The notes under the pieces were generated by a model that did no database searches, was not told where the DNA came from, and saw nothing but the letters and a program-made list of their open reading frames with translations. A DNA stretch of 63,858 bases, counting the filler, from Lenisia limosa (Eukaryota; Protista; Breviatea): the NCBI GenBank assembly GCA_001655205.1. It is 13 parts of 13 records of this genome, joined end to end, with 100 filler letters (N's around TTAATTAATTAA, not from the genome) between each part and the next. Parts side by side here need not be neighbours in the genome. Positions count along the whole stretch, not along the records: positions 4,277 to 14,978 come from LPNZ01006067.1; 12 more parts are not named here. One strand, given 5' to 3'. This document shows positions 4,177-15,561 of the stretch, piece after piece. Both the position numbers and the translations under genes were made by a program. The stretch's first letter is position 1. The number at the start of each line of letters is the position of its first letter.

Positions 4177-4469
4177 NNNNNNNNNNNNNNNNNNNNNNNN
4201 NNNNNNNNNNNNNNNNNNNNTTAATTAATTAANNNNNNNNNNNNNNNNNNNNNNNNNNNNNNNNNNNNNNNNNNNNGCTGAAAGGAAGCATATGGGGATT
4301 GTTTATGACTAAAGTGGTCGTTTTCAAACCTCGGGTGGTGCTTTGGAAATACACAATAATCCTTCTCTGATTCGCTAGACTGATTTTAATCTTGTACTGA
4401 ATTTGTCGATAAATCCTCAAAAACTATCGGTATTTTCCCGGGGTTTTTTCGAAACAAGTGAAGTCATAG

Positions 4470-5597
4470 TCTTTACTATCCATGGGATAAAGAAGGGGGC
4501 GATATCGGTTAGACTTTGGATTGACACCGCAGTTGTGTATCTCTTTTGGCCTCGTCCGATCTACGGCGGCCCCTCCAACGTCCATTATCTCACCAAGGGC
4601 ATTTTTGAGACTTCGGTGGGAGCAGCGGATCCTCATATGTTTTTTTATCTATTTTTTTTATTGATTATCTCTCCACACCTAACAGGCGGAATCGACATTT
4701 TTTGTTAATATTACTGATCATTCTGCAAATTCTGTTCTGACAGCAAAGGTCACTAAGGATGATGGTCAATCTCACGTTATCATGGCCTACTCACCTTACT
4801 CCGCCGAATCTGCCATGATGCACGCACGTTTTGCGAAACTGTCAATTGAGTATGGGGCTTGGGTTGTCAATAGATTCATCCGGCGTTCATCTCTGAAGCT
4901 AACACGGCAGATACGGCTCGGACAAGCTGACCTTCTTCAAGGCCGATATTGACACTCAGGAGCCGCTGCAAGACCTGTATGGGTCCTTCACTTTGGAAGA
5001 ATACCAGAAGAAATATCGATTTTATTATAAAAATAATATAATATAAGCCGTCATTGTTTTGAACGTAGATATAGTCATCATCGTTCACCCGCACAGTTTG
5101 TCCCTGAATTGTGGATATTTCGAGACCGATCTTCCTGCACTTGTTCTCTACCAAAAAGGAAAGGTTAGCCACACATATCATATCATAACTATTCCGTTTA
5201 GACTCATTTCATTCCTTGGATGTACATGTATATCATCGATTTTAACTTTTTTTATGTTTTTTTTTTATTTTTTGGAGTAAATGATTATAGTACCGTTATG
5301 TAGTTACTCACCATCATTCCTATTTCAGCATACCCCCCTCCCAGGAATGCAGAAGCGAGGCCTGGGCTTTGTTTGTTTTGTTGTCATCAACCCTCGTGTG
5401 TTGTTAGCCAACAGAGTTGATTTGGGGTTTTTTGTTTCATAAATTTTCTAATTTTACCCCCCCTCCCCCAGGAAGTCGGGCGTATCTCACAGTGTCAAAA
5501 GAGGTCGGACAAGAAAATCATTTCTTCAATGAAGTTCGATGAAGTCATGAAGGGAAAGATCCATCCCCAGCTTAAGAAGAACAAGAAGAAGGACTAA
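4470..5597 (+). CDS. TMX2: Thioredoxin-related transmembrane protein 2-like (redox-inactive), partial
   Basis: Exons starting at 4470, 4749, ~4910, ~5093 and 5472 join in phase. They give YLFWPRPIYGGPSNVHYL...AYSPYSAES...FAKLSIEYGSDKLTFFKADID...DLPALVLYQKGKEVGR...KKNKKKD*. The CxxC position reads SAES, and the C-terminus is lysine-rich. Confidence 0.7.
5348..5454 (+). mobile_element. Repeat family A copy (C-tailed, acceptor-associated) with flanking direct repeat
   Basis: Consensus GGATGCGGTGCTGCAGAAGCGACTGGCCTGGGCTTTG...TTCAACCCTCGTGTG..GTTAGCCAACAGAGTTGATTTTGG..GTTTCATAAATTTTCCAATTTTACTCC. About 17 loci: 1625, 5348, 9177, 11143, 14485, 17971, 19383, 20681, 37884, 39020, 39937, 40213, 42490, 50600, 56590, 61840, 62030. 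Confidence 0.85.
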
Positions 5598-5636
5598 TTT
5601 TCAATTCATGGTACAAATACATCTATGGTACAATAT

Positions 5637-8380
5637 TTACTTCCTTTTACTGGGACGCTTTTCCGTGGTTTTTGTGGTATCCGGTCCAGCTAATCGCTCC
5701 TGAAAAGTAAGGGGTGTGGGGTAGAAGATAAATACTCCACAATATATGATTTGATATGTATGATAGTATAGTATTCTCTTATGACAGGAAGCTGCAATAT
5801 TAACTGTTCAATGTATAAAACCCTGTCTAACCTGTACGGCTTCCTCTTTTGCCCTAAACTCTTCTGACATTACATCTCTCATCTCTTCAACCTGTACTAT
5901 GTGAGATCTCTGCAATACAATTGACACAATTGGAACAGTTGAGGAGGTAAACCAGGCATTAACAAACGATACACCTTCCATTCTTTCCATACCTGCACAT
6001 TGATAGCAGCCTGGACAATTTCTTGCAACTCCACTGGCAGCCTTGCCATGACCGCCTGGGCATGGGGACTTGGAACGTAAGGTCCGGCTATATGGTCAAA
6101 TCGGTTAGATATTTTTATAATATGGTCAAATCGAAAATGACATTTTATCTTGGTCTTTTTGATTACGATGTACCCTCAGGCGGAATCAATTAAATAAATG
6201 TTGATATTTTACAGTCTATAAAGGACTATGACGGAATCTAGGGGGTACAAAGAGAGGGGCGTGTGTATTTAAACAGATCTCCTGAAGTGACATCCATAAA
6301 GGATCATATCATTCTTTTTCTCTGTTCAGAAGGTGCATTATTTGTATTTTTCTCCCTTAATTTATGTTACATTTGCATTCTTGTTCTTCATATCATTGTA
6401 ACATCACATCACTGTTGTTGATTTTCACTTGCTCCTCCAAACCGTTAAAGACATCCGGCTGAGATTCAAGTTCGCTCAGATGCACAGAAGAGGCGTTTGA
6501 GGCAGCTAAGGGGTGAATGAGAAGTACTGGTATGTGTTACAAAATATAGAATGAAGATTATTTGTCAAAGCTCATATTGGACAAAAAGCGGAATATACGA
6601 GAGTTATCAACATATTACGATTCCATATGGCCTTTGCCCACCATCATTGATCTCGGACAGCTCAGGTTCGGATTCGATCTTCGGAGGCTGAGGGGGGCCC
6701 GCAGCCGTGAGGACGGAGAGAGGTGGCAACTCGCCGGCAGTCTCAAGGGTAACCTCGGGGGCCACCACCGTGAGTTGGATTCCGGATGTGAACAGCATTT
6801 TGTAGAGCTTGTAGTGTTGGAAGTACCTGGGGGCATCAGGAACTATCATAAAATAGCATTTCAATGAAACAGTAGAATATTATACTTGAGCCATGATGAG
6901 CTTAACAAGAATGAATATTTGATGAGGTCCTAATAAATGTCACTTTTTGTTCAGGAATTTTCGAACCAGAGAAAAGCGTTGATGTGAAAAGGCTCTTGAG
7001 AGCAAATACGATCACCGTCTTTTTATATTGTTTTGTTCATCATAATCAATAACGGCCGCATTTGACACATTGGTCTAATTGTGAAAGTAAGATCCAATTA
7101 CGATGATTGGGCAAATTTCGAGATCTTTTCAATTTGGGGCAATGCAAAGACTTCCAACTAAAGAGTAATAGAGTGTTAACAACTCATAAACACTGAAATA
7201 CTCAAATAATATCGAATTTGAGATTAACAAAAGGGCTTAATATTGAGGGTCCTACACTATAAGGCGGGCGTTGGATTGAGTGTGCCAAAATAAGCTTCTT
7301 GAAAACGGCCTGAGTTTCGTCCAGTCGATAGAGGGGGCTTTCTGCTGGGTCAACACGTTACAGCAGCTCAAATATGGACATGTAATATTTGAATGAGGTA
7401 AAACGGATATGCCAGGAGTAGCTTTGAACCCATGATGACAAAATTCCTCGAAAGGCACTTGATAAATACCAGTATTAGAATGGTCCTTTCGGGCCAGACC
7501 ACAGACCAATGTTCTTTTGATGAACTTGTTTCATAATAGAGAAGCACGCTGAGAGTTGAGGCTCAGTGAAACCCTCCGTCATGCAGAGCCTGTTAAGGTG
7601 ACGTTGGAAACGGGAATATCCCATTATTTGGGGTTTATGCTATTGTAAGATATATACATGTATTTACACGCAACAGATGAGAAAGTTTAATTTGAGTAAG
7701 TACCATAACGGTTGTAATCCCCCCCCCCCNNNNNNNNNNNNNNNNNNNNNNNNNNNNNNNNNNNNNNNNNNNNNNNNNNNNNNNNNNNNNNNNNNNNNGG
7801 AGAGGAGATATGGTAAACATATTCTAACTCCCTTTAACCACGCTCAATTGAAGAGGGGTTTTTTTTTTAAAAAAATTAATAGCATCTTCTATTGGTGCCC
7901 AACTCCCAGTGTCACATTTTGAAACCGGAATGGGTCGTAAAATGAAGGAAAATGAAGCCCCCAACAACAACATATAAAAAGGGAAGATGGCCGAGCTCTC
8001 TTTTCTCAAAGATAGAGCAGGTGTCCATAGCGAGGCCATCCACTCACTTGACGACATTGAAGTAGAACTCCAAAAGAACCTGGTTTTTGCCGGTGCACGT
8101 CTTCTCATCCCCAAGGTCAAAGAGCTGGGCAAGAAGTCTGAGGGGTAAAACACGCAACTACAGTTATATCATGTACTGTCAGATTATCACACAAATAAGT
8201 AAGGGACTCTTTGATGTATCTGTGATACAATCAGTGTTATTTTGTGGGGGAGTCAAAGGGCCTACGCTTTTTGCCCCTGAGGATCCAAGCCCATGAGGGC
8301 CTTGGTTTGTGTGAGCGACAGGTCCTTCCAGACAACAGACGATGCCTAAAGATAAGAAGCACATTATTGTCACCAACCAT
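5637..8380 (-). CDS. CFAP119: CFAP119/CCDC189-like (CLAMP domain) flagellar protein
   Basis: Spliced reading MASSVVWKDLSL...LLAQLFDL...VLLEFYFNVVKLCMTEGFTEPQLSACFSIMKQVH...YFQHYKLYKMLFT..., followed by a coiled-coil C-terminus. The last exon is ERLAG...SKRK* with the stop at 5637-5639. Confidence 0.7.
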
Positions 8381-9896
8381 CGTGCCTTCCTCTGATTATC
8401 CTTCCTTGAGCCCTACTTATAGTTGGTGGTGAGGCAAAGGGCCTCCTGATCTGATTTGCGAGACCCCCTGGAGTGGATGGCAAGCGTGATTCAATTTTCT
8501 TGGTTTTATAGGGGTATATTAATTGAGATAGGTGAGCAAGAGGGACAGGAAAGAAGGAAGGGGGGAAGAAAGTGAGTAATCGCGTGTCGCGCCAGCGCTA
8601 TATCCTCTTTGACCTCTTGCAGACCTCAGAACACCCTTTAGAAATCACCCCACATTCTTGCCGATACACAAACATTCAGTGAAGAAGTGTTGGCGGGGAC
8701 GCAGGAAGCGGGAGATGAGCACAAGTAAACACCCCTCATCATCTCTGCGAAGGCGACGACAGTCTCTGCCCTCTAGTCACTCTTATGCGCGGCCAACATC
8801 TGCATCAAGCAGCCGAGCGCTCAGGAACTCATCCATGCTGTCACTGTCGCTTGTTGAAGAGGGGGCCATCGTGGAGAATGTTGAAGTTGGCATAATCCGT
8901 TATTTTCTCTCTTTGCAGCGGTTTCCTTTTTCGTTCTCATGCCCACCTTCTTTTTGTTGGTTTAATACTGTAGGTGAATAAGCTCGCCCAATCGCTATCA
9001 ACACGCGGGCTCTGTCATTCGATTAAGGAGTCCAAATCACACAGCATGTTTGCAGGGTGTCTGTGTATCATTGAAGCAAGTTCGGATTGGCATAGAGAGC
9101 AACCGGTTTAAACACAAAAGTAAGCGTATTATGACACATGTTTTAGTTTCGAGTTAAAAATCTCTGAAAAATCGACCTGGGCTTTGTTTTGTTTTGTTTT
9201 AATCCGTGTACTACAATGTGTTGCCATTACATTTCCCACTTCGATGGTACAAAAGCGATTGGCCCGGTCCTTGTATGTTTAGTTTTTTATAAGCCTTGTG
9301 TGTTTCTCAAATGTTTAAGCAACGGGATTGATTTGTTGTTTTGTTTTATTCCAGAAATTTTCCAATGTTACCTGGGTTGTTTTCAACCCTTTTGTGTAGC
9401 TAACAGAGTTGATTTTTGGCTTTTTGTGTTTTATATTTTTTTCAATTTTACCCCCCCCCCCCCTNNNNNNNNNNNNNNNNNNNNNNNNNNNNNNNNNNNN
9501 NNNNNNNNNNNNNNNNNNNNNNNNNNNNNNNNNNNNNNNNNNNNNNNNNNNNNNNNNNNNNNNNNNNNNNNNNNNNNNNNNNNNNNNNNNNNNNNNNNNN
9601 NNNNNNNNNNNNNNNNNNNNNNNNNNNNNNNNNNNNNNNNNNNNNNNNNNNNNNNNNNNNNNATCACGACCGAATAATCAGAAACTACAAACAAACAAAG
9701 AAAAAAAAAGCAAGCAATAAAAAACACTTGCAACGAACGCTAGATCTAGATAAAACCAGATTACAAATGGTGGTGGTGGGGGGGTATTAATGGAGAAGAG
9801 ATACGGATGGGGATGATCAAAAATTACAACGAGTTGCTCATTTTGATTCACAACCTCTTGACTCTACATGAAAGCATGAACCAGCTCATTGTTCAG

Positions 9897-12800
9897 GAAT
9901 GAAACAGCCGTGACACTACCCGACAGCAAAGGCCGATCGTCTATCCACATCGCCGCCGGCCTCGAAGACCCGCGCCCCCTTATCATGTGTCTGCGCGTCT
10001 TAGACCCCGAGGCTCGGATGGCGGCGGCCACGGCGGCGGATCTTCAAGGCATCACACCAATCCATTTGGCGGCTCGATGGGGCAGAGCATATTCCATCCA
10101 GGTTCGCTGAACTTCATTCTTCACCGACTGTCCATTGCTCCTTGTGAAGTGGAGTTAGTTGCTGCTTTTTGTGATAGTAAATTCTTATTTTTAATAATCT
10201 ATTCCTGACTGATTTGGCCACTGACAGTCCTAGATTCTTTGTAAGGCCTTATCATTCGACCTCCTTCATTTGCAATGGCCTGACGTTAATCAAAGAGGAG
10301 GTAATGTAGGGGTAACTTTCTATTATCCGAAAAGACCGATTTAGGAGGGCCTACCCTGAGTTATAGACAGGGGCTATTGTCCTTATTCATGAATCTAATC
10401 CTTGTAGGTATGGTGAATTAATATTATACTATAGCAATATATCTTATAAGCGTGATGGTGTGGACGGCTTTATTTTTATTTCTCATTGTATATTATCCGA
10501 AAAGATCGGCAAGAATCGATATTTACTGCTTTTTAGTTCAAGAGTTAGGTACTTCAGTAGAACGCGTTTCTTTAGATGCCAAAGCAATCGCACACTAACA
10601 TCACAGATATGAACGAGGAATGGTTCATAGACCCTTCAGACGAAGAACTTCATGAGATCCATGTATGCCTGGAGCTGATGCTCATGTTATATTTGGATAT
10701 CATGTAACAAGTGAGAGTTATTATGGTTGTTATTGGTACTCTTTACTCTGGGATATTAGTATTAGCCTAAGAACTTATCTTGAAAATAGAGTCTTTCATT
10801 GCTTTGCTTGATGCAAATAAAGCTGTTTATTAGAACTGTGGTTGTTCTTATAGCTCACATTTTAGCCCTTACTTATTGCGGAATGTGAACATGGGGGTAC
10901 GACCATGCACCATGCGGCGGACGGGAACCATCTGCAGGCCATCAACACCCTCATGAAATGGGTTCGGGGTGCACTATCCACTATCAAGGCTGATTTAATG
11001 ATATTCGATGTCAAACACAGAACAGGGGTATAATAATAAGTGAACAGAACAGGGGTTTTAGTGATACGATTCTTGAAGTGCCAATACTCTCTGACCCCCC
11101 CCCTCTTACACACCCTCTCCCTTTTATTGTCATCATCAGGGATGCGGTGCTGNNNNNNNNNNNNNNNNNNNNNNNNNNNNNNNNNNNNNNNNNNNNNNNN
11201 NNNNNNNNNNNNNNNNNNNNNNNNNNNNNNNNNNNNTCCCCATTAATTTTCCAATTTTACTCCGCCCAGGGAGGCGAGGTGTTCTGGCGCTCACCAGTGG
11301 ATGACAGTCAGCCGCTGCATTGCGCCGCCGCAGGCTGCCATATCGACACCATTGAGGCTCTCCTGGAGCAAGAGGCTGACCCCATGGCCCAAGCTAGTGG
11401 GTATTTCAGGCAATTATGATGCGAATTAACGTACTCTGTAGACCTTTTAACACCAGCAGGAGATGGCACGACACCCCTTCATTGGCTGCTGAGTGAGCGG
11501 CAGTCTGAATGGGCAGTCCATCGCTCGCAAACAGGAAACAACCGGGTCAGTCTGCAGGTGCCTGGGTCACTTGGTTTTGGTTGTTCTCTTTCATATCCTA
11601 TTGCTAGGGCTTCACTTCGGTTCGGAAAATACCGGTAAAATATTGATAATTTTTTGGAGGATTTATCTAGAAATTCAGTCTTTTTTCGAACGCCACCTAA
11701 CCTATTGCGTTACAAACCATATCATATCGTTAGGAATGGTATTTATAATAGAGTACCGTATCTGATAAAACACTGAATGCGTAATCGAAAACGGTGTATT
11801 ATGAAATTCTCATTTTGCCGCATATTCCAACCGTCACTCCGCAGCCCTCACACATATCAACACCCTCTGGTGCCAGCACCCCCGTGCCGTCTGAAAAACT
11901 GAACTCTTCCGGACCGTGGGGGGGGGGCAGAGTTTTTTTATCACGGGTAGGGCTTCACTTTGGTTCGAAAAATACAGGAAAAATATCGATAATTTTCGAA
12001 GATTTATCGAGAAATTCATTCGAACCGAAGTGAAGCCCTAATCAAGGGCCTCACTTCGGTCTAACAAGGATGGGCTATTGAGAACTTTGAGAACCCCTGT
12101 CTTTATTTGGACTGAAATGGAGCCCCGAGTTTCAATAGGTTGTCATTTTCAGACCAGAAGGGCTCTTCTCATTTTCCAGTTTCCCAATGTCCAAAGTCCT
12201 TGCACTCAGTTCCGTGTCAGTCCAAAGGTTTGCGTAGTCTCTTTTTGAAGGCTAATGGCGATATGAGATAGTGTGTTAAAAATAGTATGATATTGTATAA
12301 CATCATATCCACAATGACTGTCTACACGGCTGATACTTTCACGATTATTTTTGGACAAGGAAAGCCCCCACTCACCACACAGCCATGCAACTAATGCAAG
12401 TGAGGGACGCGGCATCTCGCGAGGCAGCACCGAGGTCAGTGAAGTTGCTCAGGTTCTGGTGCGGGCCGGGGCGGATTCGGCTTGTGGCGACAATGATGGC
12501 GTGACACCCCTGCACCTTGCAACAGACAAGAGTGACGTCCTCGCCGTTTTACTGCGTGGAGCCTCGAGCAACCAGCCTTGTGATTCGAATAACATGACAC
12601 CGCTGCACGTCGCCGCCCAGAATGGTCATCATAAGTCCGTGTCTCTACTGTGCACTGCGGTGGGTGGTGAGAATTGTGCAACGTTTGCCTTGAGTTCTTA
12701 TCCAAATCACCAAGTCGATATTGTTGTTGATTTCTATCCTTACGCACACAGGGTGTGGATGTGAACGCAGTTGATAACATCGGTGCCACCGCCATGTTCT

Positions 12801-14880
12801 ACGCTTCCGAGGTATCTGGCTCGCCCTCGTGGCTATCCTTTTTCTTGTCTCTTCATTACACTTTAGAACGGATTTGAGAAAATTGTGTCAACCCTTTTAC
12901 GCGTTTGCTGGGATTTACTTCTGTATTTCTTTTTCTTTGGGTTACTAGGCAGTTTCTTTTATTACAGTTCACACAAGCATGTACTATTATTACTTGTCAT
13001 GCTGAAAGTCAGTTGAAAATCATGTGGATTACATGTCAGCTAACAAGTAACCCAATTTGATGCGTTGTGAAGTCATTGATACGTCTGCAAGGCGGTGAGC
13101 GCCGACGAGAAAGATGCTTCAGGTGCTTTGTCACTATTTTTGAAGCCAGGTTAACAGAAACAAGGTTACACACATAATCGTAAGAAATGCCGACGTGAGG
13201 GCAATTTTCTCTCCGGTCACATCGTCCACACCGGCAATATTAAAGTTAGCAGAGCCTAGAATAGTCAGAGTAGGGAAATAGAAAAATGAGTAATGCCAAA
13301 ACAAACTGTAATTTAGCGGCTGGCTTCCTCCAACAATTGATGCGACGCGAAAGTCCGTTACCTTGACCTCCATGTTACCTAATAGCATATAAGTTGCTAT
13401 TCTAAAATCAGCAAATACGTCAAAAAGAAAACATAGTTTGATGAGTTAAGGACATATGAGCAGTACTGTGATTGAAATCCGAAATGCACATTTGCCAATA
13501 GAATCCTCTATTACAATCTCCATCCCAAATATCACTTTCTAGGCTGGAGGAGACCCCAATATTGCTGATGACCAGGGCAGGTAAGCTCAGTTTAACAGGA
13601 CTTTATTTGCCGCTGGTTGGGTTACCAGGAAGTTGGAATGGATGTTGCCTGGGGTTCTATCATGTTTTTAAGATACACTTAACCATATACTATGTTACAC
13701 TTACTAAACATAACTAATAAAATGTAAACACTTAACATATCATATGATATCTTATAACTGACTGATCTGAGGGATTCAATCCTTTTGTTTATTATCATAA
13801 TATCCCTCTTTTTCCCAAGTGAAGCCTCCCTAATGCCCAGAACGGCTCTCCTTGTTGCAGCCCGAAGCAAACACGAGGACTGTGCTCGTATTCTGTTTGA
13901 AGCGGTAAGCCTTTTCACACATTTCTAAAGGACAGATGAACTATGGGTTCGTCTCAGCCTTCTACTCCTTCACATCAACTTCCCTGATATTTGTCGCTAT
14001 GTGGATAACATTTTCATTCTCCCTTTTGATCTCATGACGGAAATGTAATAGTGTTAAAAGAGTAGGTCACAAGTTTGATTAAAATGAGGGTTTCACTTCG
14101 CTTCAAAAAAGACTGATTTTCTCGATAAATCCTCGGAAACTATCGATAGTTTACCGGTCTTTTTTGAATCGAAGTGAAGCCCTAATCTCACGTTACCAGG
14201 GGGGCTCCGGGGATCCGTCGAAGAACCAGGTGCCACCCCTCACAGCGGCGGCCAGTCTTGGCCTCTCCAATGTCACTGAAATGCTCTTGAGTGGTGGCGA
14301 TGACCCCGAGCGACTGGACCTGGAGGTGTGGGAGATTTGGTGTTTTATGTCGTTTCGAGAAGAATATATGATATAGTGTATTATGTCGTGTAAATGACCC
14401 TGTTTTTTGGGGTCAGAAATCTGGTGGGCTTTATTGAATGAATAAATATGGTCTTTCGCCTTTCCCAAAACAACTCCAGGGGATAACGGCAGAGTTGATT
14501 TTGAGTTTATTTTTGTTTTATTTGATTTTTCATTTTCACTCTCCAGGGGATGTCAGCCCTACACGCTGCCGCCATAGTGGGACATGTCAGTGTGATCAAG
14601 CAGCTCATGGAGGCAGGTCCGTGCCGGGGAGGTCTTTCTTCTCATTTGCATGGCTAAAAATGACAGTGTCACGTAATTGGACTGTTACGCTACTATTTTT
14701 CCTGTGGATGATATCTAATAACATGACATTGTATCTAGGCTTAAACAAGCCATTGTATCTAGGCTTTATTGGCTTTTCTATGTTCTAATATCCCTCCATT
14801 GTATCTTATCACTCCAGGTGCCTCACTGCTCTCACGAACGAGGGATGGTGACACACCGCTTCATCTTGCCGCTCGAGAAG
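9897..14880 (+). CDS. Multi-ankyrin-repeat protein, partial
   Basis: Many exons with TPLH-type motifs: GITPIHLAARWG, GTTMHHAADGN, SQPLHCAAAGC, GVTPLHLA, MTPLHVAAQNGH, GMSALHAAAIVGH, GDTPLHLAAREG. Confidence 0.85.
11950..12038. mobile_element. MITE family C (TA-flanked, TIR GGGCTTCACTTCGGTTCGAA)
   Basis: TA|GGGCTTCACTTTGGTTCGAA...TTCGAACCGAAGTGAAGCCC|TA. Other copies at ~4380-4466, 11607-11698, 14088-14182, 16481-16575, 39183-39275, 39670-39761 and 40867-40939. Confidence 0.85.
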
Positions 14881-15561
14881 GTACGTCTCTTAGAGAATCA
14901 ACATTCCTTCTGAACATGTGTGGACAGCTCAGGCCTGACTATTAATTGTTATTCACCCCCCCCCCCTGAGTGATGCAGNNNNNNNNNNNNNNNNNNNNNN
15001 NNNNNNNNNNNNNNNNNNNNNNTTAATTAATTAANNNNNNNNNNNNNNNNNNNNNNNNNNNNNNNNNNNNNNNNNNNNCCCCCCCCCCCCCCGTTTCGGG
15101 TGATCAAGTGGTGGCAGGTGGTAGAATAAGTAATATAACTAGGGCTTCACTTCAATATATGATATAACCATTCTACTACCCCATGGGGCTGAGGCTCTTC
15201 GGAGGCTGTCTTGGGCTGCATTTGAGTCATTTTGTTTTTATCACGTACTCACGTTTGTTACTCGGGTTTGTGATTGCTTATTTTTTGCTTGTTTTTGGGA
15301 TTGCATGCTATTTGTTTTTTTTTTTTTTNNNNNNNNNNNNNNNNNNNNNNNNNNNNNNNNNNNNNNNNNNNNNNNNNNNNNNNNNNNNNNNNNNNNNNNN
15401 NNNNNNNNNNNNNNNNNNNNNNNNNNNNNNNNNNNNNNNNNNNNNNNNNNNNNNNNNNNNNNNNNNNNNNNNNNNNNNNNNNNNNNNNNNNNNNNNNNNN
15501 NNNNNNNNNNNNNNNNNNNNNNNNNNNNNNNNNNNNNNNNNNNNNNNNNNNNNNNNNNNNN

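Follow-up and report, generated by a model that had tools for sequence, protein, structure and literature searches.

A C-tailed, retroposon-like repeat family at the 3' ends of introns in Lenisia limosa

The 49 Mb genome of Lenisia limosa contains a repeat family of about 140 nt, here termed family A, whose few thousand copies are preferentially located, in sense orientation, immediately upstream of splice acceptors. In our best reading, family A and its sister family B probably constitute a non-autonomous, reverse-transcribed and C-tailed retroposon of this length, which would target the C/T-rich ends of introns and in most cases insert upstream of an AG that is already present. This reading builds on direct observations of the abundance of family A, its anatomy, the position and orientation of its copies, one acceptor that is used in RNA and a tail whose length depends on age. 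The family was recognised in a stretch of 63,858 nucleotides of this genome including filler, hereafter called the window, to which all coordinates refer unless a locus is named.

The eukaryotic assembly is fragmented, with its 49 Mb distributed over 11,727 contigs. A 24-nt motif from the 3' end of family A, with up to two mismatches permitted, finds 2011 matches genome-wide compared to none for the reversed control pattern, and a first look with the window copy as query provided 2661 candidates. This window copy, located between positions 5348 and 5457, is itself a 5'-truncated member of the family, and the 40 genomic copies that were scored share 87–92% identity with it. The existence of a dispersed family, as proposed in the earlier note, is thus well supported. 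The summed depth of DNA contigs over the window element exceeds that of its flanks by about four orders of magnitude, which provides no copy number yet agrees with thousands of copies. For a detailed description, we have sampled 100 loci (227 kb), consisting of the 60 best-scoring matches and of 40 loci with the exact tail motif that were picked in the order of the contigs, the latter serving as less biased subsample. A consensus of 136 nt and a hidden Markov model (HMM) were built from these loci and used to locate 153 distinct copies, which underlie the figures on anatomy and position given below and are taken from an assembly whose contigs are often terminated by runs of C. The median identity of the copies to the consensus is 89%, suggesting that the family is not very young. 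Family B shares the head of family A, has a tail of the same type and behaves alike. Searches of metagenome and viral contigs, of a library of papers in full text and of the supplements of a paper on introners retrieved no sequence of family A.

Family A starts with GTACGC and ends with TTTTAC, which is followed by a C-run. Inspection of the 45 nt upstream of 100 element heads together with the full-length copies placed the real 5' end four bases upstream of the consensus, since heads are preceded by GTAC with unrelated sequence beyond, which extends the length of full-length copies (such as the one at L017:478-613) to about 140 nt. The 3' end is retained in 126 of the 153 copies, whereas the 5' starts are scattered across the entire model. 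Among the 42 copies with intact 3' end in the 40 less biased loci, only eight are of full length, leaving about 80% without a 5' end. The same gradient is found in exact 16-mers counted genome-wide, with counts that rise from 438 for the head, a number that is inflated by the sister family with its common head, through 786 for the central part to 863 for the tail. The earlier suggestion that copies are truncated to variable extent at their 5' end while sharing their 3' end is therefore borne out on a genomic scale. The length of the C-run following TTTTAC ranges from zero to 14 or more bases, with 10 runs ending in assembly gaps, and it increases with identity to the consensus (rho 0.30, p = 0.002), from a mean of 2.3 C in copies below 80% identity to 7.1 C in those of at least 90%. 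This is the behaviour expected of a tail that is gained at insertion and subsequently decays. The scatter of the truncation points, the constancy of the 3' end and the longer C-run in copies that are closer to the consensus together define an anatomy that is retroposon-like, as had been anticipated, with the variable 5' truncation and the simple-sequence tail decaying with age both being features of non-LTR elements that integrate by target-primed reverse transcription (TPRT).

Other classes of mobile elements provide a poorer description. Neither the copies of family A nor its consensus contain terminal inverted repeats (TIRs), and tests of flank pairs did not detect a target-site duplication (TSD) of fixed length, both of which would be found in a MITE or another TIR-containing DNA transposon. 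A full-length copy shows no stable RNA fold or terminal hairpin (z = +1.0) and full-length copies obtained no matches to Rfam or tRNA models. Matches to a MIR319-like Rfam entry belong to an unrelated MITE hairpin and were thus discarded. The family also differs from a SINE in the strict sense, as it lacks a head derived from tRNA, 7SL or 5S RNA and an internal promoter, and as it carries several runs of four or more T within its consensus, which, as internal terminators, argue against transcription by Pol III.

The copies in the window were examined on the contig covering positions 4277 to 14978, where all members of family A are found on the + strand, the strand of all features described here, and where the three that reside in recognisable genes are in sense orientation. 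One of these is contained in a host intron of 308 nt (5164–5471), in which the first 184 nt are unrelated to the family and the last 124 nt are composed of a family A copy and its C-tract. The 5'-truncated copy at 5348–5457 (nhmmer E = 1.3e-30) spans residues 24–136 of the consensus and terminates with TTTTAC at 5452–5457. It is succeeded by a segment at 5458–5471, comprising a C-rich tract of 12 nt (CCCCCCTCCCCC) and an AG at 5470–5471, after which the exon starts at 5472. Together with the GAA at 5472–5474, this segment forms the downstream copy of a direct repeat. Its upstream counterpart at 5333–5347 consists of a C-run, T, CCC, AG and GAA and is preceded by ATAC, and its AG at 5343–5344 with the three ensuing exon bases is presumed to be the former acceptor. 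Further downstream, a head-to-tail array of three pieces, assigned by sequence and HMM to residues 34–74, 18–136 and 58–136 of the consensus, occupies positions 9171–9464; its TTTTAC at 9446–9451 leads into a run of 12 C and an assembly break, with N from position 9465. Another copy, at 11140–11269, starts inside the head (GGGATGCGGTGCTG...) and contains an N gap. In this case, TTTTAC at 11255–11260 is followed by TCCGCC and CAG, with the exon starting at 11270. The last copy, at 14485–14540, is short and 5'-truncated (consensus approximately 87–136, nhmmer E = 0.024) and it terminates in TTTTCAC without a C-run. It is flanked by an exact repeat of 11 nt (CTCCAGGGGAT), whose upstream copy at 14474–14484 holds the former acceptor AG (14478–14479) and five exon bases, and whose downstream copy at 14541–14551 contains the acceptor AG at 14545–14546, with the exon starting at 14547.

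The use of an acceptor located directly behind a family A copy is documented by an RNA contig of 1673 nt, obtained from a poly(A) RNA run of the same study, which matches the window without mismatch and shows joints at 4614/4748, 4849/4911, 4976/5097 and 5163/5472, all with GT..AG ends. Since the last of these connects 5163 to 5472 and skips the 308 nt of the host intron, the AG at 5470–5471 following the copy at 5348–5457 is used, as the earlier note had predicted, and the upstream AG at 5343–5344, whose possible use had been raised in the same place, is not used in this RNA contig. The acceptors proposed upstream of 11270 and 14547 have found support in protein homology, as both exons match the ankyrin repeat profile, with the match spanning the exon 11270–11401 in the first case and the first residue corresponding to profile position 2 in the second. 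For the small exons, among which the earlier note had recognised TMX2, the profile search yielded no Pfam match. The introns seen here range from 61 to 355 nt, which does not agree with the median of 57 bp published for an orthonectid (PMC6543705), and the donors validated by RNA in the window are mostly GTATGG, GTGGGN and GTTAGN. TNAC, a C-rich tract and AG are likewise found at the end of short native introns in the window, as exemplified at 5083–5096. Outside the window, acceptors were judged from open reading frames and GC content. Removal by splicing is observed in RNA for one copy, namely that at 5348–5457 in the window.

On a genomic scale, a tract of at least 80% pyrimidine with an AG within 30 nt of the copy is found after 71 of 108 assessable copies (66%; 56% in the less biased subset), compared to 6% at random positions of the same loci. 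The distance between element and AG has a median of 12 nt and a range of 3 to 25 nt. In the 150 nt following this AG, at least 30 open codons are found on the element strand in 89% of the cases, compared to 59% after random AGs (p = 2e-9) and to 62% on the antisense strand (paired p = 4e-5), and the GC content increases from 0.40 upstream of the element to 0.51 after the AG. Moreover, 46 of the 49 loci with two or more copies carry all of them on the same strand. These numbers extend the proposed sense-strand association with acceptors, which is strong, beyond the window. Family A is represented in the introns of a wide range of unrelated genes by numerous copies that are almost identical, of which one is seen to be removed by splicing.

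The site of integration is also biased. In 32% of the copies compared to 6% at random, the 14 nt that precede the 5' junction contain a C-run of at least four bases or a tail-like motif. The end of a TNAC motif lies no more than a few bases away from the junction in 22% compared to 10% (p = 3e-5), and G accounts for only about 12% of the upstream flank, which is rich in pyrimidines. Many copies directly follow the TTTTAC of an older family A element, of family B or of other tails. Insertion into pyrimidine-rich sites, frequently the C-run or tail of an older copy, is therefore supported. In nested copies, a C-run is found only after the downstream copy, and the head-to-tail joints are mostly of the type TTTTAC/GTACGC without an intervening C-run, with TTTT/GTAC, TTTTA/GTAC, C-run/GTAC and AG/GTAC as variants that sometimes contain one to three extra bases.

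The role that the earlier note had attributed to target duplications could be sustained only in part. All three direct repeats that it described in the window are present at the stated coordinates, but they differ in their weight. The 11-mer CTCCAGGGGAT occurs exactly twice in the window compared to an expectation of 0.01 and it brackets the short copy at 14485–14540 precisely, which makes it a convincing target duplication that includes the old AG and five exon bases. In contrast, the 8-mer CCCAGGAA shared by the repeats at 5333–5347 and 5458–5474 is also found twice but with 0.47 occurrences expected, and is thus on its own not significant, although the similarity extends on both sides to TAC, C-run, T, C-run and AGGAA with only the lengths of the C-runs differing. 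CAGGGA (11137–11142 and 11267–11272) is too short for a test and overlaps with the GGGA of the element itself. In the sample of family A, none of five forms of the test has revealed a general TSD signal. Exact anchored repeats and mismatch-tolerant repeats at the junctions, in the latter case with C down-weighted, were observed in three to four cases compared to one to two in permuted flank pairs, and in gapped local alignments scored against all mismatched flank pairs the mean z amounted to 0.18 (p = 0.10), the few outliers being L018:1072-1136, L039 and the window copy. Clear TSDs are thus confined to few copies, namely the short copy at 14485–14540 with its repeats at 14474 and 14541, L018:1072-1136 (12 nt with one mismatch) and L039, and a duplication is recognisable in about 5% of the copies, in tests to which TSDs made solely of C are invisible. 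Variable-length TSDs consequently do not serve as hallmark of the family, since real flank pairs barely exceed permuted ones, and repeats spanning the intron–exon junction, which the earlier note had emphasised, are not a general property of the family. Among 56 copies adjacent to an acceptor, a single one, the window copy itself, carries at its 5' junction a duplicate of the AG together with the bases that begin the exon. A repeat of the AG with at least six exon bases (thus at least 8 nt) within 450 nt upstream is found in three cases with 0.34 expected, and one of these, in L093, encloses a composite in which a piece of family B is combined with one of family A.

The scarcity of such duplications bears on the proposal that the acceptor would be rebuilt from a duplicated AG. 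The bases between the C-run and the AG vary between loci (GC, TC, T, AT, AC, TGC and TCC), which suggests that in most copies the element has landed upstream of a resident AG. Together with the duplication found in only one of 56 copies, these sequences indicate that the acceptor would in general be kept and not regenerated, with regeneration as the exception.

These properties can be reconciled in a mechanism whose starting point would be an RNA copy of the element, most likely contained in host transcripts made by Pol II, which would be reverse-transcribed at the target by a reverse transcriptase (RT) supplied in trans. In this process, the C-rich 3' end of the RNA may anneal to a C/T-rich tract via the bottom strand of the latter, which is rich in G. 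As such tracts would in this genome mostly be polypyrimidine tracts of introns and tails of older copies, the pairing could determine both the position just upstream of the acceptor AG and the sense orientation. Of the earlier proposal of a C-rich tail priming on the G-rich bottom strand, the orientation, position and pyrimidine-rich sites agree with our data, and it is the pairing itself that we infer from them. Reverse transcription would often stop early, giving rise to 5' truncations, and the 5' end would usually be joined without detectable duplication of the target, often immediately after a TNAC motif resembling a branch site. Occasionally, a duplication of 7–17 nt may arise, which can include the AG. 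With the TTTAC of the element, which resembles the branch consensus yUnAy and may act as branch site, and its C-tract placed beside the resident AG, the intron could still be spliced, and it is for this reason that copies would be tolerated and accumulate at the 3' ends of introns. The same targeting would also account for nesting and head-to-tail arrays.

The source of the RT was sought in the assembly, where only five matches to the RVT_1 profile were obtained. Two of them are decayed fragments of LINE type, and the sequence visible downstream of these shows no resemblance to family A. Two others are an open reading frame resembling a group II intron on a contig of 1.1 kb and a Ty3-like element. 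The LINE-type endonuclease domain Exo_endo_phos_2 has no match in the assembly. The RT-encoding element with a common 3' tail that the earlier note had envisaged was thus not found, as neither of the two LINE-like fragments is accompanied by a similar tail. An autonomous LINE with the 3' end of family A was likewise not detected in this fragmented assembly, which does not imply its absence from the genome. The missing partner and the lack of an overall enrichment of TSDs, a classic mark of TPRT, weigh against a retroposon, as does the fact that neither an empty site nor an RNA intermediate or a polymorphism was seen.

Part of the evidence could also be accommodated by a mobile spliceosomal intron, an explanation that we consider doubtful. 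Here, the template would be an excised intron RNA, reaching from the donor GTACGC to a trimmed TTTTAC or to the C-tract and AG, either linear or as lariat with a trimmed tail, which is copied into the pyrimidine tracts of other introns, with head-to-tail arrays resulting from an RT that, on reaching the 5' end of such an RNA, jumps to the 3' end of a second one. Full-length copies start exactly at GTAYRC with differing sequences upstream, they lack a promoter-like head and contain many internal T-runs, their commonest joint is TTTTAC/GTACGC without C-run (with TTTT/GTAC, TTTTA/GTAC, AG/GTAC and one to three extra bases as variants), and copies with clean TSDs (14485–14540 and L018:1072-1136) end at a TTTTAC-type motif without a C tail, all of which is in line with such an origin. 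However, none of 23 full-length copies in the sampled loci adjoins an exon on its 5' side, an AG/GTAYRC joint with a following head is found at only 16 genomic sites, and GTACGC fits the donors validated by RNA in the window only loosely. The commonest joint also retains a C after the presumed branch A, which is not expected from read-through of a lariat, and a start with GT has a chance of 1 in 16. Termini that recall a donor on one side and a yUnAy branch motif with a pyrimidine tract on the other, together with the thousands of sense copies in genes, may further evoke a classical introner, a transposable element that creates new introns by inserting into exons and whose products would be the copies found at intron ends, and introner families of non-LTR origin or without TSDs and TIRs are on record (PMC12130899, PMC9860276). 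We regard this as very improbable, since about 80% of the copies have lost the 5' end and with it a donor, since the window copy accounts for no more than the final 124 nt of an intron of 308 nt, and since full-length copies reside inside larger, older introns, with the described 0 of 23 adjoining an exon at their 5' side, and contain no TIRs. Family A is thus not an introner in the defined sense.

A spread on the level of DNA, either by a HUH or rolling-circle-type transposon that inserts beside a TNAC-like motif without TSDs or by repeated gene conversion or break repair involving intron ends of similar sequence, would be compatible with the lack of TSDs in most copies, the enrichment of TNAC at 5' junctions and the near-absence of RT genes in the assembly. 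We nevertheless deem it improbable in light of the graded 5' truncation with a constant 3' end, the homopolymer tail that decays with age, the lack of TIRs and of a terminal hairpin, and the length of the few clear TSDs, which varies between 11 and 15 nt, as truncation, a decaying tail and variable TSDs are marks of reverse transcription and not of known DNA transposons. Finally, the family might not be mobile at all but instead reflect a convergent block of splicing signals or an artefact of assembling poly-C, for which one could invoke that native introns of the window share an end of TNAC, C-rich tract and AG (5083–5096) and that C-runs often border N gaps. Such a reading is hardly conceivable and is in fact refuted, since 110–136 nt that are 87–93% identical among hundreds of copies do not arise by convergence, the reversed control pattern has no matches, independent DNA contigs span the copies and the intron is removed in RNA. 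We thus retain a C-tailed retroposon as the probable explanation.

Among known systems, the closest parallel to such a retroposon is found in the TPRT of LINE-1 and Alu, which is characterized by variable 5' truncation, a fixed 3' end, a poly(A) tail that shortens with age and a target complementary to the tail. Family A is similarly short, non-autonomous and 5'-truncated, its homopolymer tail shortens with age, its sites would be complementary to this tail and its occasional TSDs are variable. It differs in the C-rich instead of poly(A) nature of the tail, in the absence of a Pol III head (tRNA, 7SL, 5S) and of a detected partner LINE, in TSDs that are undetectable in most copies and in its near-confinement to the 3' ends of introns in sense orientation. 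R2 and simple-repeat-targeting elements of the R1 clade are autonomous, encode their own endonuclease and insert into a defined multicopy target. With these elements family A shares the preference for a defined short target, the small extent or absence of a TSD and head-to-tail arrays generated by insertion into copies of the same target, whereas it has no known coding partner and its target is a loose class consisting of TNAC and a C/T-rich tract. Poly(U) tracts of antisense Alu elements can act as polypyrimidine tracts in exonisation and thereby accidentally create new exons. There, as in family A, the tail of a retroposon serves as pyrimidine tract of an acceptor, but in family A it is a sense tail at the resident acceptor of constitutive introns, which constitutes the normal state of the family. 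In introners of algae, fungi and dinoflagellates, some families lack TSDs and TIRs and a minority is of non-LTR origin, and like family A they are abundant in introns of many unrelated genes, in sense orientation and with ends that carry splice signals; in contrast to introners, which make whole introns, family A mostly consists of pieces that have lost their 5' end and lengthen an existing intron at its 3' side (PMC9860276, PMC12130899, bioRxiv 10.1101/2020.10.14.339549). A description of a C-tailed element directed to acceptors was not found in the literature searched.

Collectively, family A appears to have rewritten the region of branch site and pyrimidine tract in many introns of one small genome, with more than half of at least 2000 copies located at acceptors. 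This bears on a long-standing problem, namely the growth and turnover of introns and the origin of their signals, for which our results suggest a simple physical rule, where the pairing between tail and target would aim a retroposon at splice acceptors in an orientation that is harmless to the host. The C-runs also explain many of the breaks in the assembly of this genome and could mislead the prediction of genes. If the elements should turn out to be mobile introns, they would provide direct genomic evidence for the spread of introns by reverse transcription of their spliced-out RNA and a test of excised introns as templates of retrotransposition. If instead the retroposon is confirmed, it would add a C-rich-tailed, acceptor-directed element to the known range of TPRT and offer a tractable system to investigate how much of a splice acceptor can be supplied by a mobile element.

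The C-tailed family A, a retroposon-like repeat found at the 3' ends of introns, has a sister, family B, with which it has its head in common and from which it differs in the 3' half (...TTCTTCATCGAAATTTCCTTCGTTTTAC followed by a C-run). Within the fetched loci of the assembly, 27 copies of family B were found (L015:1-2075 and others in L097, L078, L016 and elsewhere), and the window contains an antisense piece at 9664-9740. As in family A, 5' truncation is also observed in family B, whose copies are often directly followed by AG and exon-like sequence, and arrays mixing pieces of both families into A/B chimeras are present as well.

In several copies (on contigs G000:C359, C596, C703, C1226 and C4854) the first ~30 nt of the head are duplicated in tandem (...GCAGAA/GCTGGAGTGATGGG...), which suggests either a subfamily or repeated slippage. 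A short intron at a contig end (window 14940-14978) has the 3' end ...TTATTCAC, 11 C and then TGAGTGATGCAG, and its last bases resemble a family A head (GGAGTGATG...GCAG) joined to a tail. This may be a heavily deleted copy that supplies the acceptor.

With respect to a partner that would mobilise family A in trans, the locus L101 (G000:C6086, a contig of 1148 bp) carries an intact reverse transcriptase ORF of 322-359 aa of the group-II-intron type (RVT_1, E = 3e-38). This ORF is alone on its short contig and may be organellar or originate from a bacterial contaminant, and it is an unlikely partner of family A.

Unrelated to family A is a MITE-like family of ~95-105 nt with terminal inverted repeats of 20-30 nt (TAGGGCTTCACTTCGGTTCG...), with copies at window 11948-12040 and 14084-14186, partial copies at 11605-11690 and 4396-4472 and a further copy outside the window (L088:862-976). 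Its copies are intronic and use both strands. In Rfam the family matches plant miRNA hairpin models weakly and below threshold, and these matches are surely spurious.

At window 5472-5698, a single RNA contig passes from a plus-strand gene with GT..AG joints directly into a convergent minus-strand gene, where the stretch from 5698 to 7256 contains six CT..AC joints, and the 3' ends of both genes therefore overlap or abut.

C-runs generally fall at assembly gaps (window 7730 and 9465). One run of 11 C on the plus strand, followed by an N gap (window 7712-7729), resides in an intron of a minus-strand gene, to which it is antisense, and no recognisable family A body is attached to it. Runs of 7-12 G directly follow or are close to apparent 5' splice sites, as in GAG/GTGGGGGGGGG (L010 ~1060-1075, L097 ~1331-1350, L033, L034, window 11909-11925 and 9770-9790), and some introns therefore combine a G-run by the donor with a C-run by the acceptor.
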